Virus record (IMG/VR): IMGVR_UViG_3300035703_000010
Coordinates: 124,001 to 188,000 of that record
Reading direction: 5' to 3' (one strand)
Length of the DNA: 64,000 bases
Shown: piece after piece, positions 7,839 to 36,483 of the stretch
Layout: each line of letters begins with the position of its first letter
How positions within the stretch are numbered: position 1 is the stretch's first letter
The notes under the pieces: generated by a model
Database searches by the model: none
Told to the model about the DNA's origin: nothing
Seen by the model: only the letters and a program-made list of their open reading frames with translations
Position numbers and translations under genes: made by a program

Positions 7839-7856
7839 TAGATAACTGATCATATA

Positions 7857-7889
7857 AAACGCCGGAGATCAAATAGGTTTCCGGCGTTT
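7857..7889 (+). terminator. GC-rich hairpin between ssb and recA (terminator or processing stem)
   Basis: Perfect 10-bp inverted repeat AAACGCCGGA ... TCCGGCGTTT; only a short T run follows. Confidence 0.5.
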
Positions 7890-7927
7890 GTACTATTCAA
7901 GCACTTTAGGAGATAATAACAAGACAT

Positions 7928-9557: not shown

Positions 9558-10513
9558 TCTTGAACATTGAACATCCGATCTTAATAGTTGATGCTCAAAA
9601 CTTATTTTTAAGAAGTTGGGCTGCATATCCAACTATGAATAAAAATGGAGAACCGATGGGCGGATGCATCGGTTTTCTAAAATCTCTTCAACGTATTTGT
9701 CGTGAAATTCAGCCTTCCCAAGTGTTTGTTGCTTGGGAAGGTGGCGGTTCACAACGAAGAAGAAACTTATATTCTGAATATAAGTTAGGACGAAGACCTG
9801 AAAAATTGAACAGGTTTTATGGCGACGATATACCGGATTCAGAAGAAAACAGAAAGCATCAACTGATAAGCCTATTAGGGATGTTAAAGTTTACTCCTGT
9901 TTGTCAGATCTATGTTTCAGATTGTGAAGGTGATGATGTCATAGCTCACCTTTGTAAAGGTCCGTTTAGGAATGATAAAAAAGTAATTGTCTCTTCAGAT
10001 AAAGACATGTATCAATTGTTAGATGACAAAACAGACATATACAGTCTTCATAAGAAAAAGATAGTTACTGCTGATAATATCTTTGAAGATTACAGGATAA
10101 AGACGCACAATTTTGCAATAGCAAAAGCAATTTGTGGAGATTCTGGTGATAATGTTCCTGGCGTAAAAGGTGTTGGATTTAAAAAGGTTGCATCTAAAAT
10201 TCCAATTCTTGCTGGAGATCAAGAGCTTATTTTGCAGGAAGTTTTTGACTTTTGTCAATCAAGAATTGATGAGTCTATTATTTATCGTCGCATCATGGAA
10301 AACGTTGACGACGTAAAACGAAACTGGAAATTAGTTCATTTAGACGGTGGAATGTTATCAGCAGATCAAGTTTCTAAAGTGCAATATGTTATCGATACAT
10401 TTGTTCCTAAGGTTGATAGGATGGGATTGATTAGAGCATTAGTCAAAGAAGGAATTGAAGACTTTGACATCGAAGGCTTTTTTTACGATCTGAATCCATT
10501 AGTTAAACGCTGA
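9554..10513 (+). CDS. 5'-3' exonuclease / T4 RNase H-like flap nuclease
   Basis: LIVDAQNLF, EGDDVIA, SSDKDMYQL, GDSGDNVPGVKGVG (FEN/PIN fold with H3TH motif). Confidence 0.9.
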   Translation: MILNIEHPILIVDAQNLFLRSWAAYPTMNKNGEPMGGCIGFLKSLQRICREIQPSQVFVAWEGGGSQRRRNLYSEYKLGRRPEKLNRFYGDDIPDSEENRKHQLISLLGMLKFTPVCQIYVSDCEGDDVIAHLCKGPFRNDKKVIVSSDKDMYQLLDDKTDIYSLHKKKIVTADNIFEDYRIKTHNFAIAKAICGDSGDNVPGVKGVGFKKVASKIPILAGDQELILQEVFDFCQSRIDESIIYRRIMENVDDVKRNWKLVHLDGGMLSADQVSKVQYVIDTFVPKVDRMGLIRALVKEGIEDFDIEGFFYDLNPLVKR

Positions 10514-10524
10514 TTAACATTTTT

Positions 10525-11946
10525 ATGACTACACAAAATACAACTCCTACGTTCGGTACTTACGGCAAGTCTTTTCAAGAAAAGATCATGCAAGCTTTGT
10601 TAACCGATTGGAAGTTTGCAGAACAAATGACTGAAGTTTTCAATTCTTCATATTTTGAATTGAAATATCTTCAATTCCTCGCAGACAGGTATTTCTCATA
10701 CTCTAAGAAATACAAGGTTTTTCCGACTCTACAACTTCTTGCTACAATTATCAAAGAAGATCTTAAGGTAGGAACAGATGTTATTCTTCGCGATCAAATC
10801 ATTGACTATCTTCAACGAATGAAGAGCAATCCTGACGCAGGAGATCTACAATTCGTTCGTGAAAAATCTTTGGACTTTTGCCGCAAGCAAGCGTTGAAGG
10901 CAGCTTTAGAAAATGCTGTCGATCAAATGCAAGCAGATAAATACGAGTCGATTGTAGAATCTATCAAAAAAGCTGTCCAGGTAGGAACGGCTCCTTCTGT
11001 CGGTCATGACTTTTTTAATGAACTAGATGCTAGATTTACTCGTCTAAAAAGAGATACTATCCCGACTGGTATTCCTGAGTTAGATAAAAAAGAAATTTTG
11101 CATGGTGGTTCTGGAAAAGGTGAACTTCTTTGCGTAGTAGGTGGTTCTGGTTCTGGTAAATCACACTTTTTGACTATGATTGGTGCAAATGCATTGCGTC
11201 ATGGAAAGAATGTTCTTCATTATACCTTTGAGCTATCTGAAACTGCTGTCGGTATTCGTTATGATTCAAATCTATGTGATATTGATTCCAATGAAGTAAT
11301 GGATCGCAAAGAAGAAGTCAAGAAATTCTATGATGACAACAAGGGATTAGGAAGGTTATTCATCAAGGAGTATCCTACGAACACTGCGTCGATCTTCACG
11401 ATTCGATCCCACGTCGAAAGGTTGGATCTTAAGGGGTTTAAACCTGATATCATCGTCATAGATTATGCAGATATCATGAGATCGACGCGTCAGTTCGATT
11501 CTTTACGACATGAACTTAAGCTTGTCTATGAAGAGCTTAGAGGGCTAGCAATGGAATATGGCGTTCCTATTTGGACTGCATCACAATCCAACAAGGAAGG
11601 AGCAAATGCTGAAGTTATCGACATGACAAACATGTCTGAGGCCTATGGTAAGGCGATGATTTGTGACTTCATCATTTCAGTTTCTCGCCGGTCTCATGAA
11701 AAGGCTACAGGATGGGGTCGACTTTTCGTTGCAAAGAACCGTGCTGGTCGAGACGGTCTTGTTTTTCCTGCAAAGATTAATACCGCAAGAAGCCAATTTG
11801 AAATTGTTGGTGCAGCAGACGTTCCAGAAGCAGCTACTGTATCAGATGATGAAGCTCAAAAAAGAGCACTTCGAGCAAAATGGCAAGAATTAAAGAAAGA
11901 ATTTTCGACTCAAAAGCCGAACAACTTAGAAGCTAACGTTATATAA
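10525..11946 (+). CDS. dnaB: Replicative helicase, DnaB/gp41 family
   Basis: Walker A GGSGSGKS, Walker B IVIDYAD, WTASQSN, VAKNRAG. Confidence 0.9.
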   Translation: MTTQNTTPTFGTYGKSFQEKIMQALLTDWKFAEQMTEVFNSSYFELKYLQFLADRYFSYSKKYKVFPTLQLLATIIKEDLKVGTDVILRDQIIDYLQRMKSNPDAGDLQFVREKSLDFCRKQALKAALENAVDQMQADKYESIVESIKKAVQVGTAPSVGHDFFNELDARFTRLKRDTIPTGIPELDKKEILHGGSGKGELLCVVGGSGSGKSHFLTMIGANALRHGKNVLHYTFELSETAVGIRYDSNLCDIDSNEVMDRKEEVKKFYDDNKGLGRLFIKEYPTNTASIFTIRSHVERLDLKGFKPDIIVIDYADIMRSTRQFDSLRHELKLVYEELRGLAMEYGVPIWTASQSNKEGANAEVIDMTNMSEAYGKAMICDFIISVSRRSHEKATGWGRLFVAKNRAGRDGLVFPAKINTARSQFEIVGAADVPEAATVSDDEAQKRALRAKWQELKKEFSTQKPNNLEANVI

Positions 11947-11974: not shown

Positions 11975-14554
11975 ATGACACACACACGAGATGAAGCATT
12001 TAAGGCATCGTTGGAATATTTCAATGGAGACGAATTGGCTGCATCAGTCTTCGTCGATAAGTACGCTCTAAGAACTCCAAAGGGTGAGTTATTAGAACTT
12101 ACTCCATCTGATATGCATCGTCGCATTGCTAAGGAGTTTGCTAGAATCGAGGCAAAGTATCCTAATCCACTCTCTGAGAAGGAAATTTTTTGTCTGTTGG
12201 CAGACGTCGAACACCTCGACATTGCACAAAGAGACAGGATGTCTATTGAAGAGCTTGCAAAGGAATCTAGAGGTTTAGGTCCAATCGTTCCCCAAGGTTC
12301 TCCTATGTCTGCAATTGGTAATGATTTCCAATACCAATCATTATCAAACTGCTTCGTCATTCAGTCACCCTACGATTCCTACGCAGGTATTCTTAAGGCC
12401 GACCAAGAACAAGCTCAGATCATGAAGCGTCGTGGTGGTGTTGGTTTCGATATCTCTACGATTCGTCCAAAGGGTATCGTAACAGCCAACGCAGCTCGTA
12501 CCACCGATGGTATCGGCGTCTTCATGGAGAGGTTCTCCAATACCTGCCGTGAGGTTGCTCAAGGTGGTCGTCGTGGTGCCTTGATGTTGACCATTGATGT
12601 TCATCATCCAGAGATTCGAACCTTCATCAACATCAAGCGAGACCTTAAGAAGGTTACCGGTGCTAACATCTCCATCCGTCTTACTGACGAGTTTATGCAG
12701 GCAGTGAAGGATGGCACACAAGTTCAACTTCGTTTCCCAGTAGAGAAGGATGCAAAGCACTCAATCGAACAAATGGTTGATGCCAAGCAACTTTGGCACG
12801 AGATCATCGAGGCAGCTTGGGCTTCTGCAGAGCCAGGTTTGCTCTTCTGGGATACCGTCAAGAAGAGAACTCCAACTGAGGCATACACTTCTTGTGGCTA
12901 TGGTTCGACTTCTACAAATCCATGCGGAGAGATCGTTCTTTCTCCATACGATTCTTGCAGATTGCTTCTCGTCAATCTCTATAAGTTTGTCAAAAATCCA
13001 TTCACTTCAGCCGCAGCTTTTGACAACGAAAGATTCAAGGACGTCGCTGTCAAGGCCCAAAGACTCATGGACGATTTGATCGACCTGGAGATCGAGGCGG
13101 TAGACAAGATTATCGCCAAGATCCAAAATGATCCAGAACCTGAAGAAGTCAAACAAGCCGAGCTCGATCTTTGGAACAAGATTAAGAAGGCAGCTCTTGG
13201 TGGAAGAAGGACTGGTTTAGGTATCACGGCCCTTGGCGATACTCTAGCGGCGATGGGATTCGTCTACGGCTCAAAGATTTCTATCCAGATGACAGAGTCT
13301 CTCTATAAGGCGCTGGCTCTATCTGCCTATCGTTCGACGGTAACGATGGCAGCAGAGCGTGGTGCATTCCCTGTCTTTTCTCACAAGCTTGAGGAGAAGC
13401 ATCCGTTCATCCAACAAATTCTCGAGTCAGACCCCGACCTCGTAAAGGATTATAAGAAGCATGGTCGCCGAAACATCGCTCTAACGACGACTGCGCCAGC
13501 TGGTTCTGTTTCTGTTCTTACGCAAACGACAAGTGGTATCGAACCGGCGTTCATGCTCTTCTACAAGCGCCGCAAGAAGGTCAACTGTGATGATCCAAAC
13601 ACCAGAGTCGACTTCGTCGATCCGCTCGGCGACAAGTGGCAAGAGTTCATGGTCTACCACCACGCTTTCAAGAAGTGGATGGAGGTCAATCATAAGACCG
13701 AGGAGCACGTCGCAGAGTCTCCATATCATGGCGGTACAGCCAATGAGATCGACTGGGTTGCCAAGGTGGATCTACAAGCGGCAGCGCAGAAGTGGATCTG
13801 CCATTCTATTTCTAACACCACTAACATTCCAAACTCAACTTCTGTCGACGTTGTTAAGGACATCTACATGAAGGGTTGGGAGACTGGATGTAAGGGCGTC
13901 ACTATCTATCGTGATGGTTGTCGAACCGGCGTCCTTGTGGCCGAGACGAAGAAGGAAGAGAGAAAGGTCGATGCTTCTGACCAACCGGAAACAATGGTAG
14001 AAAGCCACGCGCCAAAACGACCAAAAGAACTAACATGTGATATTCATAGAATTAACGTGAGGTCAGGAAATGACAACGAGTCATATCTTGTGTTGGTCGG
14101 TAAGCTAGCTGGTAAGCCTTATGAGATTTTCTGCGGATTGTCTCAACACGTCGAAGTTCCAAAGAAGGCTAAGACCGGAGTTCTTATTAAGAATGGCAAG
14201 AAAGACGGCGTAGCAACTTATAATCTCCAGATTCCAATTGGAGACGATGACCATCTTCTCTTCAAGGACGTTGTTGAGTTGTTCGCAAATCCCAACCATG
14301 GTGCCATGACAAGGACATTATCGCTAGCACTTCGACATGGTGTACCAGTTCAATACGTCGTTGAACAATTACAAAAGGATAAGCACAGTGGTCTACAGTC
14401 TTTCTCTAAGGCTGTTTCTAGAGTCCTAAAGACTTACATTCCTGATGGAACCAAGTCTCAATCAGACAAGACTTGTTCTTCTTGCGGAGTTGAAGGTTTG
14501 ATTTACAAAGAAGGATGCGTTACCTGTGCGTCGTGTGGCTGGAGCAAATGTTGA
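11975..14554 (+). CDS. nrdJ: Class II (adenosylcobalamin-dependent) ribonucleotide reductase
   Basis: SLSNCF, GGVGFD, TNPCGE, RRTGLG, TTAPAGS, WETGCKGVTIYRDG, and a C-terminal CxxC...CxxC redox tail. No NrdB gene nearby. Confidence 0.92.
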   Translation: MTHTRDEAFKASLEYFNGDELAASVFVDKYALRTPKGELLELTPSDMHRRIAKEFARIEAKYPNPLSEKEIFCLLADVEHLDIAQRDRMSIEELAKESRGLGPIVPQGSPMSAIGNDFQYQSLSNCFVIQSPYDSYAGILKADQEQAQIMKRRGGVGFDISTIRPKGIVTANAARTTDGIGVFMERFSNTCREVAQGGRRGALMLTIDVHHPEIRTFINIKRDLKKVTGANISIRLTDEFMQAVKDGTQVQLRFPVEKDAKHSIEQMVDAKQLWHEIIEAAWASAEPGLLFWDTVKKRTPTEAYTSCGYGSTSTNPCGEIVLSPYDSCRLLLVNLYKFVKNPFTSAAAFDNERFKDVAVKAQRLMDDLIDLEIEAVDKIIAKIQNDPEPEEVKQAELDLWNKIKKAALGGRRTGLGITALGDTLAAMGFVYGSKISIQMTESLYKALALSAYRSTVTMAAERGAFPVFSHKLEEKHPFIQQILESDPDLVKDYKKHGRRNIALTTTAPAGSVSVLTQTTSGIEPAFMLFYKRRKKVNCDDPNTRVDFVDPLGDKWQEFMVYHHAFKKWMEVNHKTEEHVAESPYHGGTANEIDWVAKVDLQAAAQKWICHSISNTTNIPNSTSVDVVKDIYMKGWETGCKGVTIYRDGCRTGVLVAETKKEERKVDASDQPETMVESHAPKRPKELTCDIHRINVRSGNDNESYLVLVGKLAGKPYEIFCGLSQHVEVPKKAKTGVLIKNGKKDGVATYNLQIPIGDDDHLLFKDVVELFANPNHGAMTRTLSLALRHGVPVQYVVEQLQKDKHSGLQSFSKAVSRVLKTYIPDGTKSQSDKTCSSCGVEGLIYKEGCVTCASCGWSKC

Positions 14555-23240: not shown

Positions 23241-24317
23241 ATGCAAAGAACTTTATGCTTTGATGATGTACTATTAGTCCCTCAATACTCTGAAATTGAA
23301 TCAAGAAAAAATGTTGATTTATCAGTTTCAGGGTTTGACGTTTCTGAAGCACAACTGACTACTTCTCATCCTGTTTTAAAGTGTCCAATTGTTGGATCTC
23401 CGATGGATACAGTTATCAGTCCTGCTGCAGCTGCAATTCTAGAAGACTTTGGAGGCTTTGGAGTTCTTCATCGGTACTGTACGATTCAGGAATCAGTTAA
23501 AATGTTTTTAGAAACTGTCAGCAAATGCCCTGGCAGTCAAACGCCTAATATCATGGTTGCTGTTGGAGCAACTGGCGATTATCTTGAAAGGGCCACTGCA
23601 TTATACGAAGCAGGTTGTCGAGCTTTTTGTATCGATGTAGCGCATGGTCATCATTCTTCTGTAAAGAATGCATTATCAGAAATGCGTTTAAAGTTTGCAA
23701 ATGAAGTTCACATCATGACAGGAAACGTTGCAACCCTTGAAGCGTTTAACGATTTAGCTGATTGGGGGTCAGATTCAATCCGCGTTGGCGTCGGAGGAGG
23801 TTCGATGTGTTCGACAAGAATCAGAACCGGTCATGGCGTTCCGACGTTACAATCTATTATGGATTGTGCAAAATCTGATAGAGATGTTTTTATCGTTGCT
23901 GATGGAGGAATTCGCAATTCTGGCGATGCTGTTAAGGCTCTTGCTGCAGGTGCTGATATGATTATGCTTGGTTCAGTACTAGCAGGTCATGATGAATCTC
24001 CTGGAGAATTGATCGATTCGCACGGATTATCTTATCAAAACAAGCCATTAGGAATTAGCCTATTTAAAAAATTCAGAGGAATGGCGTCAAGAGAAGCTCA
24101 AATTCAATGGAGAGGAAGAGTTTCAGTCGTCGAAGGTGAATCAACAACAATACCTTACAAAGGATCATTATCAAACACAATAACTGATCTATTAGAAGGT
24201 ATTAGATCTGGTCTTTCTTATTCTGGAGCTAGAACCATTAGAGAACTAAGAACCAGCGCTAGATTCATCACAGTGACAGCACAAGGGGTCCGAGAAAACG
24301 GACCCCATGGTAAATGA
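23241..24317 (+). CDS. IMP dehydrogenase / GMP reductase family protein (no CBS domain)
   Basis: FDDVLLVP, PMDTV, IDVAHGH, GVGGGSMCSTR (catalytic Cys), IVADGGIRNSGD, FRGMAS. Confidence 0.9.
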   Translation: MQRTLCFDDVLLVPQYSEIESRKNVDLSVSGFDVSEAQLTTSHPVLKCPIVGSPMDTVISPAAAAILEDFGGFGVLHRYCTIQESVKMFLETVSKCPGSQTPNIMVAVGATGDYLERATALYEAGCRAFCIDVAHGHHSSVKNALSEMRLKFANEVHIMTGNVATLEAFNDLADWGSDSIRVGVGGGSMCSTRIRTGHGVPTLQSIMDCAKSDRDVFIVADGGIRNSGDAVKALAAGADMIMLGSVLAGHDESPGELIDSHGLSYQNKPLGISLFKKFRGMASREAQIQWRGRVSVVEGESTTIPYKGSLSNTITDLLEGIRSGLSYSGARTIRELRTSARFITVTAQGVRENGPHGK

Positions 24318-25198: not shown

Positions 25199-26203
25199 AT
25201 GGCTAAAGGATTAGACGTCGGTACATCATTTATAGTTCTTGCTGAAGAAGGCGCAAAAGGAAAAGTTACATACAAAGATTTCCGCGATGCTTTTTATGTC
25301 ATCAAACCTACAACTCCAATTGCAACAAAGATGATTGAAAAGGGATTAGCAGGAAAAACTTTCGTTAAGGATGCCGATGGTTCTTTCATCATCCTTGGAA
25401 AAGACGCAATTGAGAAGGCAGTCGAGAGAAACGATTCAGCTAAGAGACCGATGTATAAAGGCGTAGTTTCTTCAAAAGAAAAAGATGCAAGAAGAATTTT
25501 GACTTATATCCTTAAAGAAGTATCAGGAACACCAGCAGAACCAGGAGAAAAATTAGTCTTCTGCGTACCAGCTCAACCTGTCGATCAAGAAGATGAGGAT
25601 TTTGACGTCGGATACCATGAAGACGTAATCGTAAAACTTCTTACAGAAGTTGGGTATTCAGCACGTGCAATAAATGAGGCCGAAGCTCTTTGTTATTCTG
25701 AACTAGAAAAGGATGATTATACTGGAGTGGCTCTATCATGGGGCGCGGGAATGGTTAACGTTTGCGTAATGCTCAATGGTGAACCTGTCGTTACTTTCTC
25801 TACAACGAAGTCTGGTGACTGGGTTGATCGCATGGCTGCAGTGGCTACTGGAGAACCTGATTCTATCGTTCAGGCAGAAAAGGAAAATGGAGATTTTACC
25901 GTAGGTCAGCCGAATGACAATCAAGTTCTTGCTGCGGTTGCTTCTTATTATGATCGTCTAATCGATTACACGACGAAGCAATTGGCATCATCCATGGAAG
26001 GACATAAGTCTATTCCAAAGTTCAAGGATCCGCTTCCAGTCGTCGTTGCTGGAGGAACCTCAAAAGCAAAAGGATTCGTCGATCTTTTTGCAAAGAAACT
26101 TAATGAGAATGGTTTTCCGCTTCCTGTCAAAGAAGTTCGTCATGCAGCTGATCCACTTCATGCTGTTGCTCGCGGTTGCCTAATCGCTGCGCAAATTATG
26201 TAA
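25199..26203 (+). CDS. Actin-like ATPase (MreB/MamK/ParM superfamily)
   Basis: Phosphate-1 GLDVGTS, connect-1 INEAEAL, phosphate-2 variant LSWGAGM, adenosine motif VAGGTS, connect-2 AVARGC. Confidence 0.85.
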   Translation: MAKGLDVGTSFIVLAEEGAKGKVTYKDFRDAFYVIKPTTPIATKMIEKGLAGKTFVKDADGSFIILGKDAIEKAVERNDSAKRPMYKGVVSSKEKDARRILTYILKEVSGTPAEPGEKLVFCVPAQPVDQEDEDFDVGYHEDVIVKLLTEVGYSARAINEAEALCYSELEKDDYTGVALSWGAGMVNVCVMLNGEPVVTFSTTKSGDWVDRMAAVATGEPDSIVQAEKENGDFTVGQPNDNQVLAAVASYYDRLIDYTTKQLASSMEGHKSIPKFKDPLPVVVAGGTSKAKGFVDLFAKKLNENGFPLPVKEVRHAADPLHAVARGCLIAAQIM

Positions 26204-26224
26204 GTTTATTGTCGAGTTGTTTGG

Positions 26225-26250
26225 AAAGGGCTCCGTGTGGAGCCCTTTTT
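26225..26250 (+). terminator. Intrinsic terminator after the actin-like gene
   Basis: AAAGGGCTCC-gtgt-GGAGCCCTTT followed by TT. Confidence 0.85.
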
Positions 26251-26268
26251 CATTTTAGAATCTTACTG

Positions 26269-26298
26269 GTGCAAAATATCTTGTCTTTAGGTTACAAT
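26269..26298 (+). promoter_or_regulatory. Putative sigma70-like promoter of dnaE
   Basis: GTGCAA (26269), 18 nt spacer, TACAAT (26293), immediately after the terminator. Confidence 0.35.
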
Positions 26299-26311
26299 AT
26301 GAAAATAGGTA

Positions 26312-29005
26312 ATGACTACAAAAGTTCCTTCACGATTCGTAGGCCTTCACAGCCACTCGGGGTTTAGTACCTTTGATGGACTTGATTATCCGCAAGAACA
26401 CATCGATTACGTTCTAGAGAACGGTATGGATGCCTGGTCGTTGACTGACCATGGTCACATGAACGGATTCTGCCATGCATATCTTCATGCCGAGAAGATG
26501 AAAAAATCAGGTAAGAACTTCAAGTTCATTCCTGGCTGCGAGATGTACGTCCATCCTGATCTAAAACAATGGCAGATCGATCTCGATAAGTCGAGAGAAA
26601 AACCGATCAAGGACGAATCTATCCTCACACCCCTCGCTGCGATCGTTGACGGTAACGATGAAACGACTGACATCGGTACCGATGAAGCCGCATTGACCAT
26701 CGAAAACGAGGAGGAAACAAAATCAGGCAAGTACAACGACCCGATCAAACGTCGGCATCATCTCGTTGTCCTACCGAAAACATCAATTGGCCTACAAAGG
26801 TTATTCCATCTAGTTTCTCGAGGTTATTTGGAGGGCTTCTATAGGTTCCCACGAGTTGATTATGCGATGTTGAAGGAAGCCGCAAAGGGAGGTCATCTCA
26901 TGATTTCAACAGCATGCCTAGGTGGTGTGCTGAGCTATGACGTCTTCTCAAAGGTTCAACGCGTCAAGTTCGATGACCTATCACACAAACTTCTTGATGA
27001 TAGGAGCTTGCTTGAGTCAACCTTGCTTGAGATGGGTAACACATATGACAAATTGGTTAATGCTGTAGGACGAGACAATGTTTGCCTTGAGCTACAATTC
27101 AACAAACTTCCAGCCCAACATCTTGTTAACCGCGCAATTCTTGAATTTGCGAAGAAGAATTCATTGACTGATCGACTCGTTGTAACTTGCGATTCTCATT
27201 ATTCTCGTCCAGACAACTGGAAAGAGCGTGAGATCTACAAGAAGCTAGGATGGCTTAATTACCAAAACTTCGATCCGAACATGCTGCCGAAGTCGAAGGA
27301 CGATCTGAAGTGCGAGTTGTATCCAAAGAACGCACCTCAGGTCTGGGATTCCTACCTGTCCACGTCTGAAGACATGTCATTCTATGATGATGATGTTGTT
27401 CGTGAAGCAATCGAGCGGACTCATGACATCGTCCACAATGAAATCGGCGATATCCATCCTGATAAGGAGATGAAGCTACCATCCTACGTCATCCCTGAAG
27501 GATTCACTGAAGATAAAGCATTGGTCGATGCATGTAAGAAAGGTCTCATTTGGCGAGGGCTCGATGACAAGCCTGAGTACATCGAACGTATCAAGTATGA
27601 GCTATCGATCATCAAAGGTAAGAAGTTCTCACGCTACTTCTTGACGATGAAGGCGATCATGGATTTGGCACGAGAACATATGTTGATCGGGCCAGGTCGC
27701 GGATCTGCTGCAGGTTCTCTCGTTGCTTATGTTCTTGGTGTTACTAACCTTGACCCTATTGAATACGACTTATCATTTGAACGCTTCCTTAACCCATCTC
27801 GACAAGGCGCTCCTGATATCGATTCTGACATTGGAGATCGCGATAAACTAATCGAGCTCATGCGCGAAAACTTTGGTAATAACAATGTTATCCCAATTTC
27901 TAACTACAATACTTTTAAGTTAAAGAGCCTCATTAAAGACATCGCGCGGTTCTACAACATCCCATTTGAAGAAGTCAATGCAGCCTTAGCTCCCGTTGAA
28001 GATGACGTAAAGAAAGAGGTCTTTAAGCCAGGAGTTGATAAGAATCTTTTCGTCTTGACTTATGAAGATGCGATGAAGTATTCAAAGTCGATGCAAGACT
28101 TCGTCGCAGCGCATCCAGAGGTTGCAGAACCTATCGAGATCTTATTCAAACAAAACCGATCTCTCGGCCGACATGCGGGTGGCGTCATCGTGTCGGAGAA
28201 CGTTGCAGAGAGGATGCCTCTTATTCTTGCTCGTGGCGAACCTCAAACCCCATGGGTCGAAGGTATGCACTATAAACACCTAGAAGAGTTCGGCTGGATC
28301 AAATTCGATCTACTAGGTCTTGAAACCCTGCGCATTATCGAACGAGCTATCTACCTGATTCTGCAACGTCGAGAAGGTGTAGCAAATCCAACATTTAAGG
28401 ATGTGAAGGCTTGGTTCGACAAGCATATGGATCCTAAGAATATCGATCTCAATGATCAAAGGGTGTATGAATACGTTTATCATGAGGGACGATTTGCTGG
28501 TGTGTTCCAGTGTACGCAACCTGGTGCTCAACGATTGTTCACTAAGGCAAAGCCTCGCAGCATCATCGACATTGCAACTTTGACATCGATCTATCGTCCT
28601 GGTCCTCTAGCGGCCAATGTCGATAAGATCTATATCGGCGCCAAGAACGAACCTGATAAGATCGATTACCAGCACCCTTTGATCAAGAAGGTGCTTGAGT
28701 CTACATACGGATGTTTACATGGATCAACTGTTATTACAACTGATATTGGAGATATTACGATTGAAAAAATCGTAGAAGATCAGTTAGTCGGAACAAAATT
28801 GCCATCTTTTAACGAAGAATCTTGCGAGATTGAACAAGACGAAATTGTTGCTGCAGTTTGCACTGGCGTTCAAGAGACTCTAACGATTGAACTTGAAGAT
28901 GGAAAAACTATTCGTTTAACATCAGATCATAGAGTGTACACAACTAGAGGCTGGGTCGAGGCTGGAGATTTGACTGCAGAAGACGAAATTTTTGGAATTG
29001 AATAG
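26312..29005 (+). CDS. dnaE: DNA polymerase III alpha, N-terminal part, fused to the N-half of a split intein
   Basis: PHP domain (HSHS, TDHG, GCE, DSHY), GPGRGSAAGS, catalytic PDIDSD, KFDLLGL, RPGP. Ends STYG|CLHGST (IntN from residue 801). Confidence 0.95.
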   Translation: MTTKVPSRFVGLHSHSGFSTFDGLDYPQEHIDYVLENGMDAWSLTDHGHMNGFCHAYLHAEKMKKSGKNFKFIPGCEMYVHPDLKQWQIDLDKSREKPIKDESILTPLAAIVDGNDETTDIGTDEAALTIENEEETKSGKYNDPIKRRHHLVVLPKTSIGLQRLFHLVSRGYLEGFYRFPRVDYAMLKEAAKGGHLMISTACLGGVLSYDVFSKVQRVKFDDLSHKLLDDRSLLESTLLEMGNTYDKLVNAVGRDNVCLELQFNKLPAQHLVNRAILEFAKKNSLTDRLVVTCDSHYSRPDNWKEREIYKKLGWLNYQNFDPNMLPKSKDDLKCELYPKNAPQVWDSYLSTSEDMSFYDDDVVREAIERTHDIVHNEIGDIHPDKEMKLPSYVIPEGFTEDKALVDACKKGLIWRGLDDKPEYIERIKYELSIIKGKKFSRYFLTMKAIMDLAREHMLIGPGRGSAAGSLVAYVLGVTNLDPIEYDLSFERFLNPSRQGAPDIDSDIGDRDKLIELMRENFGNNNVIPISNYNTFKLKSLIKDIARFYNIPFEEVNAALAPVEDDVKKEVFKPGVDKNLFVLTYEDAMKYSKSMQDFVAAHPEVAEPIEILFKQNRSLGRHAGGVIVSENVAERMPLILARGEPQTPWVEGMHYKHLEEFGWIKFDLLGLETLRIIERAIYLILQRREGVANPTFKDVKAWFDKHMDPKNIDLNDQRVYEYVYHEGRFAGVFQCTQPGAQRLFTKAKPRSIIDIATLTSIYRPGPLAANVDKIYIGAKNEPDKIDYQHPLIKKVLESTYGCLHGSTVITTDIGDITIEKIVEDQLVGTKLPSFNEESCEIEQDEIVAAVCTGVQETLTIELEDGKTIRLTSDHRVYTTRGWVEAGDLTAEDEIFGIE
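28712..29005 (+). mobile_element. Split intein N-part (IntN, 97 aa)
   Basis: Starts with Cys1 (CLHGSTVI), has block B IRLTSDHRVYTTRGW, then a TAG stop with no block F/G. Confidence 0.93.
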
Positions 29006-29048
29006 ACATATGGGTATATTTATCTTCCAAGAAAGAGGCTCTTGGAAG

Positions 29049-29954
29049 ATGAGAACTTGTGAATGTTGTGATAAAAAATTTGTTTATACAGGACCAAAAG
29101 GAAAAAATTATCCCGCAAAGACTTGCAGCGCAGAATGTTATAAGATATTAAGATCAAAAAAAATATCTCAATCAAACATCGATAGAAGGATACACGAAAA
29201 AGTAGAAAAGATTTGCGAAATTTGTGGTACGATAATCATAACAAATGATACAGAGAACCAACGCATAACTTGCTCTAAGAAATGTCATTCTAAGAGATTA
29301 TCGAAATTATACGCAGGAAGAAAAATAACTGAAGAGTGGCGACAAAATCAGAATAAGTCAAAGACTAAAGACAAAATTGTAAAGCATGGAGATTTTTCAT
29401 GTGATAAATGTCAAAAACATTTTGATACCAACACTTCGCTTAGATCTCATAGATCATATTGTACTCCTGGAAATGAAGGTCATATTTGTTGCGAAATATG
29501 CAATAAGAGTTTTTCTACGCGAGGGTACAAGATCCATTTTAAGAGTCATGATTTAATATGGAGATCGAAGACTACAAGTTCTCTTCAAAAATCTCTACTA
29601 ACAAGAACGAAATGTCAGACTACCTCTAAATCAGAGTTAGAATTTTTTGAAAAATTAAAGTCTTTGTTGGGTGATGATGTTGTACACAAGTTTAAAATTG
29701 AAGGAATTACTCATGAATATGATTTTTTTGTTCCTTCAAAAAATGTTATCATAGAGTTTGATGGTGATTATTGGCATGGCAATAAGAAGCTATACGAGTT
29801 ATCTTCTAGAATGAAACGTCAATATCAGATTGATAAAGTGTGGAATGAAAAAGCAATAGCTGCTGGGTATAGAATAATAAGAGTTTGGGCATCAGAGTCA
29901 AAAGATTTTAAGTTGGAAAATTATGTTAACACCCTTGAAAATAAAGTCGATTAA
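29049..29954 (+). mobile_element. Free-standing Vsr/DUF559-like homing endonuclease with N-terminal zinc fingers, lying between the intein halves
   Basis: C-terminal SKSELEF...YDFFVPSKNVIIEFDGDYWHG. N-terminal CxxC..CS..C motifs and C2H2-like fingers. ATG at 29049 after RBS AGAGG. Confidence 0.85.
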
Positions 29955-31206
29955 ACGTGACGTACCTGCAAAAGTTTATGATATTCAAACCAAGAAAAAT
30001 CATAACTTCATTGCAAATGGCTTCTTAGTTCATAATTGCATAATTTTTCAAGAGCAAACTATGAAGTTATGTTCTGTCGTTGCTGGGTTCCCGGAGGCTG
30101 AAACTGACACGATTCGTAGAAACATCATGAAGCGTTCTGCGTCTAAAAAGGATGCAGCTGCTGCAGACGCGAAGAAGGCAAAAGAAGACTTCGTCGCCGG
30201 AGCGATGAAGAACGGTGTGCCTGAAAAGGTGGCTGATGAACTATACGAGAAGATTCTCTTCTTCTCTGGCTACGGCTTTAACGCTTCTCACGCAGTGTCT
30301 TACGCAATTGATTCATATTACTGTGCCTGGCTTCTCACCTACTTTGAGGAGGAATGGCTATGCGCTTACCTCGAGTCGATGTCAGGAAATGATGAAAAGC
30401 GTGCTAAGGCATTCTCTGAAGTCAAGGCATTAGGTTACAAGATCGTCAACATCGACATCAACTATGCAACGAAGAGCTGGACGATCCTGGATGGTAAACG
30501 ATTCATGCCTAGCTTCCTTTCATGTAAGGGTGTAGGGGAATCCGCAGTAGAAGAAATCATGGAAAATCGTCCGTATAAATCAGTGGAAGATATGTTATGG
30601 AATGAGGATGGGTCATGGAGGCATTCCAAGTTCAATAAACGTGCCTTGGAGGCCCTCATTGCAATTAAGGCATTTGATTCTCTTGATTGTATCGGTCATG
30701 ATAGGACTTTCACCGGATACAAACACATGAGTGAGATCTTGATCAACAGAAACGGCGATATCAAGAAACATACAAAGAAGAATCCGACTGCAGGAATCGA
30801 AGCATTCCGTGAAGCTTTGATCGATACGAAGAACATGGATGAATGGTCCAGATCAGAATTGGTAGATAACAGCATAAAGTATCTCGGTTCATTCAACGCT
30901 GCGATGCTGATGCCAGAAGAGATCTTACAAAAGCTTGAGAGCAGAGGAGTCAAGTCTGTTGATGATTTATCTGAAAGCGACATCTATTGGTTTATCGTTT
31001 CTGATACAAAGCCTAAGAAAACGAAGACAGGAAAAAACTATTTGTTGTTAACGATTACTGGGCTTGGAGGACAAAACCATAGGTTGTTCTGTTGGGGATG
31101 GAATGGCGAAACAGAAATTCCCAAGTACAGCGTTTGCCTTTCAGAAATCACCGTAGATGGCTACGGTAATAAAACTTTCATGAGTAAGATTAAAGTCCTT
31201 GATTGA
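29923..31206 (+). CDS. dnaE: Split intein C-part (38 aa, 29923-30036) fused to the DnaE C-terminal part
   Basis: MLTPLKIKSIK...VYDIQTKKNHNFIANGFLVHN|CIIFQEQ, then DnaE motifs YGFNASHAVSY and HhH KGVGESAV. Confidence 0.95.
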   Translation: MLTPLKIKSIKRDVPAKVYDIQTKKNHNFIANGFLVHNCIIFQEQTMKLCSVVAGFPEAETDTIRRNIMKRSASKKDAAAADAKKAKEDFVAGAMKNGVPEKVADELYEKILFFSGYGFNASHAVSYAIDSYYCAWLLTYFEEEWLCAYLESMSGNDEKRAKAFSEVKALGYKIVNIDINYATKSWTILDGKRFMPSFLSCKGVGESAVEEIMENRPYKSVEDMLWNEDGSWRHSKFNKRALEALIAIKAFDSLDCIGHDRTFTGYKHMSEILINRNGDIKKHTKKNPTAGIEAFREALIDTKNMDEWSRSELVDNSIKYLGSFNAAMLMPEEILQKLESRGVKSVDDLSESDIYWFIVSDTKPKKTKTGKNYLLLTITGLGGQNHRLFCWGWNGETEIPKYSVCLSEITVDGYGNKTFMSKIKVLD

Positions 31207-31217
31207 AGAGGTATAAT

Positions 31218-31739
31218 ATGGGAATGGTTATTTTATTTGACGGGCCTGACAAGGTCGGTAAAACTGAAATGGTCAAAGAACTTTCTAAAAGGCTAAACGT
31301 TCCTTCGTTTAAGAATGAATCTGAATGGAAAGCTTTTTCTGATGATCCTGATTATTTCGTTAACGCTTTAAGATACGGTGATCCATACTTTTATAATTTT
31401 CTAAAATCTACAGGGACATCAGTCATTCTAGATAGATCATATCCTTCAGAATGGGTGTACTCTAAAGTTTACGGAAGAAAGACTGATCAAGAAGCGTTGA
31501 GGCATATCGACTCTTTGGCTGCATCGTTTGGAGTAAAGATTATTGTTCCATATCGTACTTCTTACGATGGATTGCATGATGATATGCATGACATAGATTC
31601 TGAACAAATGAAAAAGATTTCAGACGTTTATATCGAGTTTATTGAATGGACGAAGTGTAATGTCCTACGTCTGTGTGTAGATTCAGAAGACCTTGATTGG
31701 GAAATGAAAACCATTCTAAAATTTATTGGGAAAAATTGA
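31218..31739 (+). CDS. Second deoxynucleoside-monophosphate kinase (thymidylate-kinase-like)
   Basis: P-loop FDGPDKVGKT and ILDRSYPSEWVY. Confidence 0.8.
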   Translation: MGMVILFDGPDKVGKTEMVKELSKRLNVPSFKNESEWKAFSDDPDYFVNALRYGDPYFYNFLKSTGTSVILDRSYPSEWVYSKVYGRKTDQEALRHIDSLAASFGVKIIVPYRTSYDGLHDDMHDIDSEQMKKISDVYIEFIEWTKCNVLRLCVDSEDLDWEMKTILKFIGKN

Positions 31740-31743
31740 TATT

Positions 31744-32769
31744 ATGAAACTAGGAATCAGTTATTGGGGATTTTGTGAGCCATTTGAAGCATCTAAAGAG
31801 GCAAAGACTCCTGATGGTCATCGTTACGGTCGGCCTATCATGGTAGATGCCTTACTTAATCAAGGGCATGAAGTGTATGCGCTGCAGGAAAGAAGAGAAT
31901 CTACTCCATATCCTGGAATCACATATGACATGGGATTTCCTGATATTGACGTTCTATTTGTAGAATGGCGTTGGAAGACATACAAGAATTCTGGACCAAA
32001 CAAGTTTGAAAAAGATTTGGACAGACAGTTTGAACTATTGACTCATTATCATGGAAAGATTCCTGTCGTTATTTGGGATTGTGATTATAAAGTCACACAC
32101 TTAGATGAAATGATGTGGCCTGAAGCGATTATCGCAGATCCAGCTTTTGAGCCCAGGTATCTTACAAGAAAACGAGAAAGAATAATGTTCTGGACGGATT
32201 GGAAAAAGCTTCTTCCAGCTGTTTCTACATCATTTGAATATGGGTATGTAGGAAATAACTATGAGCGTCCTCAAGCTTTTGAAAAGTATTATTCTTTTCC
32301 GTCGTCGACTCTTCGCAATTATGGAATTCAAACGACAGTTCATGGAAATTGGTTGGAAGTTTCACCAGAAAGAGAATCTCCGAAAGTATTGATTTCTTCT
32401 CACCCTAGTATTTCATTTGCTCAAAGATTGAATTTCTATGAATCGATGAAGAGATTAAACTCATTTATTTGTACGACACATATTACAAAACCAGAATATG
32501 CTCAAAGAGGTTTTGCTTCTCCTAGATATGTTGAGAATATCGTTTCGAACGTGCCAGCTTTGGTTCCAAAAGAATTTTTGAAGTCGAATCTATTAGGGAA
32601 AGACTGGGCAGTTGAAGGTGGAGATTCTGTCATTGAAAAAGTCAAATTAATTTTTTCAATGAATTTAGAAGAAAGAAATTCGTTAATTTTAGAACAGGAA
32701 AATAATTTAAAATCTAGCGGTGTATTTTCAGTAAGTAATGTTGTAGATTTTCTTGAGTCGGTTAAGTGA
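31744..32769 (+). CDS. GT-B glycosyltransferase, T4 beta-glucosyltransferase-like
   Basis: The C-terminal half YGYVGNNYER...TTVHGNW...KPEYAQRGFASPRYVENIVSNVPALVPKEF resembles, from memory, T4 BGT IYGG..R...EFFGN...KNYNDNFITLRVWETMASDAVMLIDEEF. Confidence 0.65.
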   Translation: MKLGISYWGFCEPFEASKEAKTPDGHRYGRPIMVDALLNQGHEVYALQERRESTPYPGITYDMGFPDIDVLFVEWRWKTYKNSGPNKFEKDLDRQFELLTHYHGKIPVVIWDCDYKVTHLDEMMWPEAIIADPAFEPRYLTRKRERIMFWTDWKKLLPAVSTSFEYGYVGNNYERPQAFEKYYSFPSSTLRNYGIQTTVHGNWLEVSPERESPKVLISSHPSISFAQRLNFYESMKRLNSFICTTHITKPEYAQRGFASPRYVENIVSNVPALVPKEFLKSNLLGKDWAVEGGDSVIEKVKLIFSMNLEERNSLILEQENNLKSSGVFSVSNVVDFLESVK

Positions 32770-32776
32770 GGAAAAA

Positions 32777-33772
32777 ATGAAAGTATTAATTACAGGTATT
32801 GCTGGTCTTCTTGGTGCAAACTTTTCTCGTTATTTGCTTGATAAAGGCTATAAAGTAGTTGGAATCGATGATTTAAGCGGCGGGTATGAAGATTCAGTAC
32901 CAAAGGATGCTACTTTTTATAAGCTTGACTTGACCGACCAAAAGAAGGTTGACGAGATTTTTAACGCAGAAAAGCCTGATTACGTTTTTCATTTTGCAGC
33001 ATATGCAGCTGAAGGTCTTAGTCCATTCATAAGAAATTACAATTACACAAATAATGTATTAGCTTCAACCAATGTAATCAACGCTTGCGTAAATCATGAT
33101 GTAAAGAAAATCATCTTTACGTCGTCAATGGCTGTTTATGGAGTAGGAAATCCTCCATTTACCGAAGAGCAACTACCAACGCCTGAAGATCCATATGGTA
33201 TTGCAAAATATGCAGTTGAAATGGATCTGAAGTTGGCTCATGAAATGTTTGGTCTTCGATACAGCATTGTTCGACCGCACAATGTAGTTGGAATCTACCA
33301 GAACATTTGGGATCGTTATCGCAACGTAATTGGAATTTGGATTCGAAAAGCAATGAATGGCGAACCACTTTCGATTTTTGGAGATGGTACACAAGTTCGA
33401 GCATTTTCAGACATTAAGTTTTATTTGGAACCATTTGAAAAATTAATGGATTCTTACGATGGAGAAATCTTCAACATCGGTGCTGACAAACATTACACAA
33501 TTAATGAAGCTGCAGACACAGTAATCGGCGTTGCAAAAGAGCTAGGAATTAACGCAACTAAAGTTCATCTAGAAAAGAGGAATGAAGTTCATACAGCATA
33601 TTGTGATCATACTAAGGCTCATAAGCTCTTGTCTTTTGAGGACAAAACAGATTTGCGAGAAACCGTTATGAAGATGTTTAAGTGGGCCATGGAACAGCCA
33701 AATCGTCCTACAAAGAGCATGAACTATGAAATTGAAAAGAACATGTATTCTTTTTGGAAGAACACAAAATGA
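32777..33772 (+). CDS. NAD-dependent NDP-sugar epimerase/dehydratase
   Basis: ITGIAGLLG, FTSSMAVYG, catalytic YGIAK, GDGTQVRAF. Confidence 0.92.
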   Translation: MKVLITGIAGLLGANFSRYLLDKGYKVVGIDDLSGGYEDSVPKDATFYKLDLTDQKKVDEIFNAEKPDYVFHFAAYAAEGLSPFIRNYNYTNNVLASTNVINACVNHDVKKIIFTSSMAVYGVGNPPFTEEQLPTPEDPYGIAKYAVEMDLKLAHEMFGLRYSIVRPHNVVGIYQNIWDRYRNVIGIWIRKAMNGEPLSIFGDGTQVRAFSDIKFYLEPFEKLMDSYDGEIFNIGADKHYTINEAADTVIGVAKELGINATKVHLEKRNEVHTAYCDHTKAHKLLSFEDKTDLRETVMKMFKWAMEQPNRPTKSMNYEIEKNMYSFWKNTK

Positions 33773-35514: not shown

Positions 35515-36483
35515 ATGAAAACCAAGAAAGCACTATTAACAGGCGCAGCTGGATTTATTGGAAGCAACTTGGCAAAAGAACTTTTGTCTAAAGGCGTAGA
35601 CTTAGATGTTGTTGATGATCTTTCAAGCGGTCATGTAGAGTTTTTACCTCAGCAGCTTCAAGAAACGTTAATAAAAGAGGATTTTTCATCACAAAATGTT
35701 TTAGATTTGATTAAAAACAAAAAATATGATGCTGTTTTTCACATTGCAGCAATTCCTCGAGTCAGCTATTCTGTAGATTTTCCAGTACAAACAAATGACA
35801 ATAACGTATCTAAGACCCTGTCATTAATTGATGCTTGTAGAGGTAATGTAGGAAGATTTGTTTTTGCTTCTTCATCATCAGTGTACGGCGATACGAATAT
35901 TTTACCAACTCCTGTTACATGTGAAAAAAATCCTAAATCTCCATATGCATTACAAAAATCTATCATAGAAGATTATTTGAAAATTTATTACAATTTGTAT
36001 GGATTGGACTCTGCTTGCTTAAGGTTTTTTAACGTATTCGGTCCTCATCAGCTTGGAAATTCTCCGTATTCTACTGCTTTAGGGGCTTGGTTGACTGCAA
36101 TCCATTCTGGAAATCAAATGCGATCTGATGGAGACGGATCACAATCCAGAGATTTATGTTATGTTGATAACGTTGTTGACGTTTGTATAAGAGCAGCAGA
36201 GTCCCAACAAGAATTAAAAGCCGTTAAATTAAACGTAGCTTGCGGAGTAAGAACTACGAATAAAGAAATTCTTTCTTACCTTTTATCCAAATATCCAAAT
36301 GCAAAATATTATGATGCACCATGGAGACCAGGTGACGTAATGCATACATTAGCTGATATTTCTATGACAAAGGAAGTTTTAGGTTATGAGCCTTTAGTCC
36401 TTCCTTGGGAAGGGATTGATAAAACCATTAAATGGTATGATGAAAATTGGGATATGATTAAAACTCTAGGTCTTTCAAAATGA
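35515..36483 (+). CDS. Second NAD-dependent NDP-sugar epimerase (GalE/WbpP-like)
   Basis: TGAAGFIGS, FASSSSVYG, YALQK, LRFFNVFGP, GDGSQSRD. Confidence 0.92.
   Translation: MKTKKALLTGAAGFIGSNLAKELLSKGVDLDVVDDLSSGHVEFLPQQLQETLIKEDFSSQNVLDLIKNKKYDAVFHIAAIPRVSYSVDFPVQTNDNNVSKTLSLIDACRGNVGRFVFASSSSVYGDTNILPTPVTCEKNPKSPYALQKSIIEDYLKIYYNLYGLDSACLRFFNVFGPHQLGNSPYSTALGAWLTAIHSGNQMRSDGDGSQSRDLCYVDNVVDVCIRAAESQQELKAVKLNVACGVRTTNKEILSYLLSKYPNAKYYDAPWRPGDVMHTLADISMTKEVLGYEPLVLPWEGIDKTIKWYDENWDMIKTLGLSK

Follow-up and report, generated by a model that had tools for sequence, protein, structure and literature searches.

How a phage can obtain a complete DNA polymerase III alpha subunit from a dnaE gene that is encoded in two pieces is the question raised by this locus. 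The host of the window (the whole stretch of 64,000 nucleotides that was analyzed) is an uncultivated 205-kb freshwater phage. Its dnaE is interrupted by a 1325-bp cassette (28712..30036, + strand; a length that is not a multiple of three), with the junction exactly at TYG / C. Three ORFs follow each other head to tail on a single strand and in three different reading frames: the first (26312-29005, +; 897 aa) encodes DnaE residues 1-800 and then an N-terminal intein half (IntN, aa 801-897), the last (29923-31206, +; 427 aa) a C-terminal intein half (IntC, aa 1-38) and then CIIFQEQ with the remaining DnaE, and between the two lies the gene of a free-standing homing endonuclease. In the composition profile the cassette has a GC content of ~32% versus ~45% in its flanks; tblastn with all cassette parts found no second copy of any of them elsewhere in the window. 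Very probably, the locus represents a fractured dnaE: a selfish cassette of split intein and endonuclease, inserted between Gly800 and a native Cys, that would be removed from the polymerase by trans-splicing and spread by homing. The layout itself is real, and it is probably functional.

The DnaE N-extein (aa 1-800, 26312..28711, +; ending ESTYG) comprises, according to Pfam, the PHP domain, the pol III alpha domain and the first two thirds of the finger domain (PF02811, PF07733, PF17657 positions 9-114 of 166; phrog_405). The C-extein (30037..31206, +; 389 aa and stop, starting with Cys+1 of CIIFQEQ) contains the rest of the finger domain, a GYGFNASH motif, HhH and the C-terminal region (PF17657 positions 113-165 of 166, PF14579 (HHH_6); phrog_405). 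As the finger-domain matches end at position 114 and resume at 113, they abut at profile position 113/114. Both exteins are collinear with uninterrupted homologues, the N-extein up to aa 800 and the C-extein from aa 1 onwards; these homologues read PTYG / CI(I/V)FQE over the exact insertion point, and in more than 25 related phage contigs (including L003, L004 and L036) the equivalent of aa 800 is joined in frame to C-extein aa 1, in many cases with a native Cys at +1. The seamless TYG-CIIFQEQ junction postulated in the earlier note is thereby confirmed. Likewise, its statement that the site differs from the cyanobacterial one holds: the cyanobacterial split DnaE site, which we take to be EY / CFNKSH, has its counterpart in a contiguous, intact GYGFNASH at C-extein residues 78-85, ~80 residues past the junction, so that the cassette is not positioned before CFNKSH, nor are its halves at separate loci. 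In this phage clade, dnaE is broken at five or more positions, and a single gene can carry as many as three inteins. A megablast search of the GenBank phages with 28000-31000 gave 0 matches, and tblastn of the N-terminal DnaE part nothing above 30% identity; there is thus no cultured relative in that collection.

The two intein halves are 920 bp apart and encoded by separate ORFs (TAG 29003; ATG 29923, in a different frame). IntN (28712..29005, +; 97 aa and TAG stop at 29003-29005) starts with Cys1 (CLHGST, aa 801), contains block B as LTSDH at IntN 70-74 and ends with IFGIE. IntC (29923..30036, +; 38 aa) reads MLTPLKIKSIKR...VYDIQ...HNFIANGFLVHN, with block F as VYDIQ...NHNF and block G as FLVHN; its end, VYDIQ...NHNFIANGFLVHN / C, provides the block F Asp, the His-Asn pair and Cys+1, and it matches positions 122-155 of 155 of Pfam Intein_splicing. 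The lengths of both halves and all residues quoted in the earlier note are correct, and every catalytic residue that it listed (Cys1, TxxH, block-F Asp, His-Asn, Cys+1) is present in the window. Against solved inteins, IntN matched NrdJ-1 (E=7e-8) and Ssp DnaE (1zd7, E=5.5e-7), and IntC matched Spl DnaX (E=1e-5); because of these matches, and because the homologues are uninterrupted exactly there, the identification as an intein is not due to chance. The nucleophile and TxxH, the block F Asp, HN and +1 residue and the precise in-frame interruption are those of a class-1 HINT intein; the separate ORFs, the real stop after IntN and the independent start of IntC are those of a naturally split one.

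A contiguous 138-aa mini-intein without endonuclease occupies the same dnaE site in a relative (P0007/L116); it tiles as IntN (97 aa), three additional residues and IntC (38 aa) and is 70% identical. A search of MAG contigs with this single contiguous homologue gave only generic intein matches (30-37%). Its AF2 model (P0007:599-746, pLDDT 86) superimposed with TM 0.85-0.9 on the Ssp DnaB, NrdJ-1 and NpuDnaB inteins, with TM 0.86 at 35% identity on 8ubs and with TM 0.77-0.88 on gp41-1 (overall TM ~0.8-0.9 for Ssp DnaB, NrdJ-1, Npu DnaE and gp41-1); the HINT fold is thus seen in a model of the contiguous homologue, not of the split pair itself. Trans-splicing of the DnaE halves can be inferred with good support from these features. 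The promoter and terminator scan of 26000-31500 revealed no excess over shuffles, so that nothing points to separate transcription units; co-transcription of the three ORFs is probable. DnaE-N-IntN (897 aa) and IntC-DnaE-C (427 aa) would be made as separate proteins, the acidic IntN (net charge -16) and the basic IntC (+5) would associate into the canonical class-1 HINT fold, and protein trans-splicing would ligate the exteins to a polymerase of 1189 aa that reads TYG-CIIFQEQ across the joint.

The endonuclease gene (29049..29954, +; 301 aa; phrog_559, phrog_3339) overlaps IntC by 32 bp (29923-29954) in a different frame. This third ORF between the intein halves had been given no weight in the earlier note. 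Its start is placed at the conserved ATG 29049; the upstream ATG 29010, which would yield a 314-aa form, is absent in L002, an 82%-related contig with ~83-87% nucleotide identity across the cassette. The N-terminal part consists of four zinc-binding modules (two CxxC...CxxxC, one C2HC, one C2H2), and the C-terminal part (~29628-29942, ~aa 194-298 of the 301-aa form) of a Vsr-like/EDxHD nuclease domain with the invariant motif D...EFDGDYWH...D; among 17 homologues, D225, E236, D238 and H243 do not vary, and 15 of the 17 keep D262. Pfam returned no model over the nuclease domain and a single-sequence PDB search found zinc fingers only, so that a profile built from 17 sequences and a structure model were needed: the profile matched the catalytic domain of I-Bth0305I (3r3p, E=8e-6), 3hrl (5e-6) and Vsr (1cw0, 0.04), and the AF2 model, submitted to Foldseek, Vsr (1cw0, E=3e-4) and 3r3p (TM 0.65). 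The Vsr-like fold and the acidic/His catalytic residues are those of the EDxHD family, whose prototype I-Bth0305I (PMC3239194, PDB 3r3p) also carries a C-terminal Vsr-like catalytic domain; its D196, E206, H213 and D222 (mapped via the mutations of the crystal construct) align with residues of the window enzyme. I-Bth0305I is, however, encoded in a recA group I intron and uses NUMOD/HTH repeats for DNA binding, whereas the window enzyme has a free-standing gene between the two halves of the intein and carries the four zinc-binding modules instead; the search of its N-terminal 190 aa for NUMOD/HTH repeats found zinc-finger matches alone. As these repeats are a feature of the prototype and not of the family, the assignment to the EDxHD nucleases stands. 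GenBank phages contained no tblastn match to the endonuclease.

An RNA hairpin (29019..29053, +) with a 14-bp stem and a 7-nt loop spans the endonuclease start: the loop, AAGAGGC, is the Shine-Dalgarno sequence, and AUG 29049-29051 lies within the 3' arm. Its free energy is -22 kcal/mol (z=-3.8 in the window, z=-5.9 in L002), and L002 differs by a compensatory C>U / G>A pair. The hairpin is conserved at six loci, including L039, L041, L043 and L045; 95% of the cells are paired versus 43-54% in slid controls, while the covariation did not stand out significantly from shuffled alignments (75 of 500 shuffles). The structure probably acts as a translational gate that limits synthesis of the endonuclease.

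The predicted and most likely target of the endonuclease is an intein-less dnaE allele in a co-infecting relative; once this is cut, recombination repair would copy the whole cassette and short extein flanks into it. Comparison with L002 revealed a lower divergence of the cassette than of its surroundings: intein and endonuclease are 87-95% identical, the exteins only 72-81%, and the synonymous difference amounts to 0.53-0.62 in the cassette versus 0.83-0.84 in the exteins. All three parts of the cassette are under strong purifying selection, with dN/dS of 0.03 for IntN, 0.07 for the endonuclease and 0.04 for IntC; the exteins have dN of 0.13-0.21, their synonymous sites being saturated. In metagenome run X5, ~4-5 differences from the window were counted in the 1325-bp cassette (~0.3%) versus 24 in the 212 bp upstream (11%), and the low-diversity tract extends beyond the cassette into both exteins, by ~32 bp on the upstream and ~110 bp on the downstream side. 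In run X2, an empty allele (28710 joined to 30037) is present alongside the occupied one. At least 79% of the sampled words of the stretch are present in 19 metagenome runs; one RNA run contained only 13%. This persistence in at least 19 runs, the low dN/dS of the intein halves and their conserved catalytic residues speak indirectly for splicing activity. Low cassette divergence and strong purifying selection fit recent homing of a working element. In principle, low divergence of this kind could also arise by ordinary recombination, with no homing by an endonuclease involved.

If the endonuclease had been domesticated or inactivated, the cassette would now be immobile, and its low divergence would reflect ordinary homologous recombination between co-infecting phages. 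Endonuclease decay is indeed known in this family (L116 retains a 65-aa remnant between intein halves at another dnaE site), but the enzyme of the window is of full length, its invariant D/E/D/H/D residues are kept and its dN/dS is low; moreover, the cassette lies at the center of the low-diversity tract, whose flanks are short, as predicted for co-conversion, and empty target alleles co-occur with the occupied one. Loss of mobility is therefore unlikely, and homing of the cassette remains the preferred reading.

A second explanation concerns the fate of the proteins: the halves might no longer splice, the DnaE fragments either forming a non-covalent complex via the intein halves or being inactive while another polymerase replicates the genome. 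Non-covalent assembly has been documented for the Aeh1 NrdA split by a mobile endonuclease (PMC3045599), and a PolA-family ORF is also encoded in the window; DnaE may be essential, as the earlier note had it, but need not be the only polymerase. All splicing residues are, however, kept in the window, in L002, in P0003-P0011 and in the contiguous P0007; the dN/dS values of both intein halves would be unexpected if these served only for docking or if the gene were dead, and the exteins are conserved as well. We thus regard a loss of splicing as very unlikely and retain trans-splicing as the probable route to the polymerase.

The reading as one uninterrupted intein that contains the endonuclease as an internal domain and was broken up in assembly or sequencing by a spurious stop and spurious frameshifts draws on the head-to-tail order of the three parts on one strand and on the indels that metagenome assemblies can contain, but it would require one false stop and two false frameshifts and is effectively refuted by the same three-frame layout in L002 (with TAA instead of TAG and indels after the stop), by cassette-spanning contigs without a single indel from three independent studies (runs X5, X11 and X14; assembler contigs, not raw reads, were compared with the window), by the conserved Shine-Dalgarno sequence, hairpin and ATG of the endonuclease's own, by the recurrence of the split layout in L038-L046 at an endonuclease identity of only 37-44%, and by the free-standing nature of the EDxHD endonucleases known from fractured genes (Dassa et al. 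2009, PMC2677866). The stop and the frame change, whose possible origin in assembly errors the earlier note had raised, are thus real.

Fractured genes, including three DnaE loci (DnaE-1, -2 and -3), and Vsr-like endonucleases were described in 2009 (Dassa, London, Stoddard, Schueler-Furman & Pietrokovski, PMC2677866), in agreement with the earlier note, which had called this layout known from metagenomic phage sequences. As in the window, those genes consist of the N-part with IntN, a free-standing endonuclease and IntC with the C-part on one strand, the host gene is of the phage DNA-metabolism type, and the sequences come from aquatic metagenomes in both cases; a free-standing endonuclease between the halves on the same strand is found in the window, L002 and L038-L046. 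In the 2009 set, the endonuclease gene shares its last 6-69 bp with the IntC ORF, a range that includes the 32 bp of the window, and a hairpin at the endonuclease start is common to both; the Vsr-like domain of the DnaE-2 endonuclease (aa 196-315) has a position similar to that of the window enzyme. The likeness to DnaE-1/-2/-3 refers to the layout; phage-type DnaE sites were found to differ from the cyanobacterial site in that study as well. The window locus is complete at both ends and accompanied by empty, contiguous-intein and decayed-endonuclease alleles and population data, which the read-level data of 2009 could not give.

To the same fractured-gene set belong gp41-1, gp41-8, NrdJ-1 and IMPDH-1, which serve as fast trans-splicing tools. 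Like the intein of the window, they are class-1 mini-inteins that occur in nature as two pieces, have about the same length and are divided in the loop where an endonuclease is canonically inserted; among solved structures, NrdJ-1 matches IntN best. The window intein differs from them in its host protein and flanks (G at -1, CII at +1 to +3) and shares only ~25-35% identity with them and other characterized inteins; the pair (97 + 38 aa) is a reasonable candidate for an orthogonal trans-splicing tool. The Ssp/Npu split DnaE inteins share with it the Pol III alpha host, class 1 and Cys1/Cys+1, and the similarity is weak but significant (the 1zd7 match cited above; TM ~0.8 for the model of the contiguous homologue); the window intein is unlike them in its other insertion site, its adjacent halves, the endonuclease between these and its phage host. 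A search of the later literature found no paper on the TYG / C DnaE site, and the inteins tested by Pinto et al. (2020) included none from fractured DnaE genes.

No new kind of system is revealed, since the 2009 study (PMC2677866) had already reported fractured DnaE genes that combine split inteins with Vsr-like endonucleases. We tentatively suggest that the TYG / C cassette might be an uncharacterized allele in active homing, its split intein and free-standing endonuclease moving together through a freshwater phage population with coexisting empty, contiguous-intein, split and endonuclease-decayed stages of the homing cycle, that its intein pair might be a new fast orthogonal splicing tool, and that its endonuclease might naturally combine a zinc-finger array with a Vsr-type nuclease in one protein, a modular design that has yet to be characterized among homing enzymes. 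The alleles form a natural series at one dnaE site (empty, contiguous mini-intein, split with endonuclease), with a split, decayed-endonuclease form at a second site; together with the co-conversion-like tract in the population data, this series allows a direct test of the 2009 model, in which genes are fractured by an invading endonuclease. With its dnaE broken at several sites, the phage clade is also a good system for asking why replisome genes attract inteins.

On the plus strand of the window (source contig UViG_3300035703_000010: IMG/VR, viral, 204,651 bp), three ORFs are arranged head to tail, each in a different frame, and dnaE is distributed over two of them with one intein half each, as the earlier note had described. 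The first ORF (26312-29005, 897 aa) comprises the PHP domain, the pol III alpha domain and positions 9-114 of the 166-position finger-domain profile; from Cys801 onwards it encodes the 97-aa N-terminal intein half, IntN (CLHGST...LTSDH...IFGIE), which is closed by a TAG stop. The middle ORF (ATG at 29010 or 29049, end at 29954) encodes a Cys/His-rich protein with an EFDGDYWH motif in its C-terminal part. The third ORF (29923-31206, 427 aa) shares 32 bp with the 3' end of this endonuclease gene and begins with the 38-aa C-terminal half, IntC (...VYDIQTKKNHNFIANGFLVHN), followed by the remaining DnaE (CIIFQEQ...; domain profile matches to finger-domain positions 113-165 of 166 and to HHH_6). The finger-domain matches of the two DnaE ORFs meet at profile position 113/114. 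The GC content falls from approximately 45% to approximately 32% across 28700-30050; no promoter or terminator signals stood out inside the locus.

DnaE is probably the replicative polymerase of the phage; that it is essential, as in the previous description as an essential replicase, is a presumption. A PolA-family protein is also encoded in the window. This protein (a short ORF of 396 aa) is part of a replication/recombination module (4744-5934, 7928-9115, 10525-11946, 11975-14554) together with RecA, a DnaB-like helicase and a class I/II-type ribonucleotide reductase with TSCPD domain; no second intein or endonuclease copy was found in the genes of this module. Five further phage-encoded genes (50670-51920 on the minus strand, 61783-63306 on the plus strand, 23241-24317, 32753-33772 and 35515-36483) may serve auxiliary metabolism or surface modification; they encode an isocitrate lyase family protein (E=6e-100), a collagen-repeat protein, a dehydrogenase and two nucleotide-sugar epimerase-like proteins. 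Two very large ORFs (1187-4693 and 58234-61086; 1168 and 950 aa) matched no Pfam family at E<=1e-5.

The precision of the insertion was evident from a tblastn comparison of the five parts of the locus with 36 related IMG/VR loci: in more than 25 of these, dnaE is uninterrupted and residue 800 is joined in frame to residue 1 of the C-extein (...PTYG|CI(I/V)FQE..., the bar marking the insertion site). The +1 residue of the uninterrupted genes is Cys in close relatives and A, M, H, L, V or F in more distant ones. One related locus, L002, has the identical three-ORF layout; identity to the window is 81% and 72% for its exteins and 93%, 87% and 95% for its IntN, endonuclease and IntC, respectively, and its IntN stop codon is TAA instead of TAG, with small indels directly past the stop. 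When words sampled from 28600-30150 were sought in public DNA runs, 19 of these (river, lake, reservoir, freshwater, viral-fraction and subsurface metagenomes) held at least 79% of them. In the assembler contigs of X5, X11 and X14, three runs independent of one another, the cassette is free of insertions and deletions. A further run, X2, yielded both a window-identical contig and a diverged contig with 28710 joined directly to 30037, which is a natural empty allele. The rival explanation raised in the earlier note, that the stop and frame change are assembly errors in a contiguous intein, is effectively ruled out by the L002 layout, by the indel-free contigs (the comparison being made at the level of assembler contigs) and by the cassette length: 1325 bp is no multiple of three, and such an explanation therefore fails.

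Among solved inteins, IntN matched NrdJ-1 (7e-8), Ssp DnaE (5.5e-7) and also DnaB inteins by sequence, and IntC matched Spl DnaX (1e-5) and, more weakly, Npu DnaE, NrdJ-1 and gp41-1. When 5.8 billion proteins were searched with the IntN region, 11 were retrieved, all of them DnaE fragments (52-100% identity); no close relative of the intein turned up when representative genomes of bacteria and archaea were scanned. One DnaE-fragment protein, P0007 (residues 604-741; L116:4563-4976), contains a contiguous 138-aa mini-intein without endonuclease at the matching site (...ETYS|CLHG...EILGIE-ALR-SIAPLKIKSIKR...IVHN|CIIFQEQ). It corresponds exactly to IntN (97) + 3 + IntC (38) residues, is 70% identical to the halves of the window and originates from two independent JGI samples (loci L116 and L117) of a phage of roughly 60% GC; its model (pLDDT 86) superimposed on the Ssp DnaB, NrdJ-1, NpuDnaB, RecA, Npu DnaE and gp41-1 inteins with TM 0.77-0.9. 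Naturally split inteins typically have halves of opposite charge, and the net charges of IntN and IntC are -16 and +5. The dN/dS values between the window and L002 amount to 0.03 (IntN) and 0.04 (IntC). The earlier proposal that DnaE is made by protein trans-splicing is thus supported by intein matches, contiguous homologue, charges and dN/dS; at the level of sequence, the halves are predicted to be active and would restore a DnaE of 1189 aa.

In the middle gene, Pfam revealed only weak C2H2 zinc fingers; the PHROGs families of this gene are annotated as homing or HNH endonucleases. Across 17 aligned homologues a D...EFDGDYWH...R pattern is invariant; the profile of these homologues matched 3r3p (I-Bth0305I catalytic domain, 8e-6), 3hrl (endonuclease-like protein, 5e-6) and 1cw0 (Vsr, 0.04), and the conserved residues align with D196, E206, H213 and D222 of I-Bth0305I (D196A and H213A are mutations of the crystal construct). 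The best structural matches of the AF2 model (pLDDT 78) were Vsr (E=3e-4) and 3r3p (TM 0.65). From profile matches, aligned catalytic residues and model, the predicted protein is therefore assigned to the Vsr-like/EDxHD homing endonuclease family, of which I-Bth0305I is the characterised prototype (Taylor et al. 2011, PMC3239194). In contrast to I-Bth0305I, which binds DNA by N-terminal NUMOD/HTH repeats, the window endonuclease has four zinc-binding modules in its N-terminal DNA-binding region. Its dN/dS (window versus L002) is 0.07. Since ATG 29010 is absent from L002, ATG 29049 is the conserved start. The latter lies within the 3' arm of an RNA hairpin (29019-29053; 14-bp stem) whose loop presents the Shine-Dalgarno sequence AAGAGGC (z-score -3.8 in the window; -5.9 in L002, in which both sides of one pair are altered). 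The hairpin recurs in L039, L041, L043 and L045 (95% of cells paired versus 43-54% in slid controls); the shuffle test was not significant with six sequences, which are too few. In the X5 strain, a G>T change at window position 29037 converts the Shine-Dalgarno sequence in the loop to AAGATGC, which may be a step toward silencing of the endonuclease.

Dassa et al. (2009, PMC2677866) described split-intein/endonuclease arrangements at 26 loci of ocean and lake metagenomes, affecting eight types of enzyme. DnaE was interrupted at three of these loci, each time at another site and never at the cyanobacterial one. The same study described a new family of Vsr-like endonucleases; a hairpin was present at the start of the endonuclease in 15 of 16 loci, and the overlaps with the IntC ORF were 6-69 bp. 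The DnaE-2 endonuclease of that study has its Vsr-like domain at residues 196-315 and is close in size to that of the window. As the arrangement is exactly the published one, the window locus is a genuine, complete and well-supported case of a known kind.

Other split-intein/endonuclease cassettes fracture the dnaE of the phage clade, and they occupy at least four further sites: STA|C, located in the PHP domain (L006:6646-8096, Vsr-like endonuclease); GRG|S (L031); before the catalytic (S/G)APDIDSD motif (L018:7482-8797, also L019-L021, L023, L029 and L030), with a different, PD-(D/E)xK-like endonuclease; and FN(K/R)|SH (L022:8652-10202, also L031), which lies three residues from the cyanobacterial DnaE intein site. 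The two cassettes of L031 are at 7287-8564 and 9847-11360. Some of these inteins have Ser/Thr as first residue or Ser at +1. Three inteins are present in one polymerase gene in P0006 (a DnaE fragment of 609 aa), namely a GRG|S-site IntC at its beginning, a contiguous mini-intein ahead of the PDIDSD motif and a TYG|C-site IntN at its end. At STA|C in L116 (1558-2770), all that is left between the two intein halves is a 65-aa remnant ORF of a Vsr-like endonuclease (2461-2658), which shares 4 nt with the IntC ORF; this looks like a decayed-endonuclease stage. A zinc-finger/PD-(D/E)xK-like ORF (L116:625-1509) lies directly upstream of this dnaE.

The cassette is better conserved than its host gene dnaE: the synonymous difference to L002 is 0.53-0.62 in the cassette versus 0.83-0.84 (saturated) in the exteins. 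The X5 contig differs from the window at approximately 4-5 positions in the 1325-bp cassette versus 24 in the 212 bp upstream, and downstream differences start again at 30147; the low-diversity tract therefore extends beyond the cassette into the exteins, by about 32 bp on the upstream side and about 110 bp on the downstream side, which resembles co-conversion during homing. In much more distant phages (L038-L046) the same layout occurs at the same DnaE site (HN|CLIFQE) with endonucleases only 37-44% identical. The TYG|C site occurs in empty, contiguous-intein and split-with-endonuclease form, and a second site provides a split allele whose endonuclease is decayed. The locus is of value chiefly as the source of a candidate orthogonal split intein and as a natural record of the intein/endonuclease life cycle that is unusually complete.
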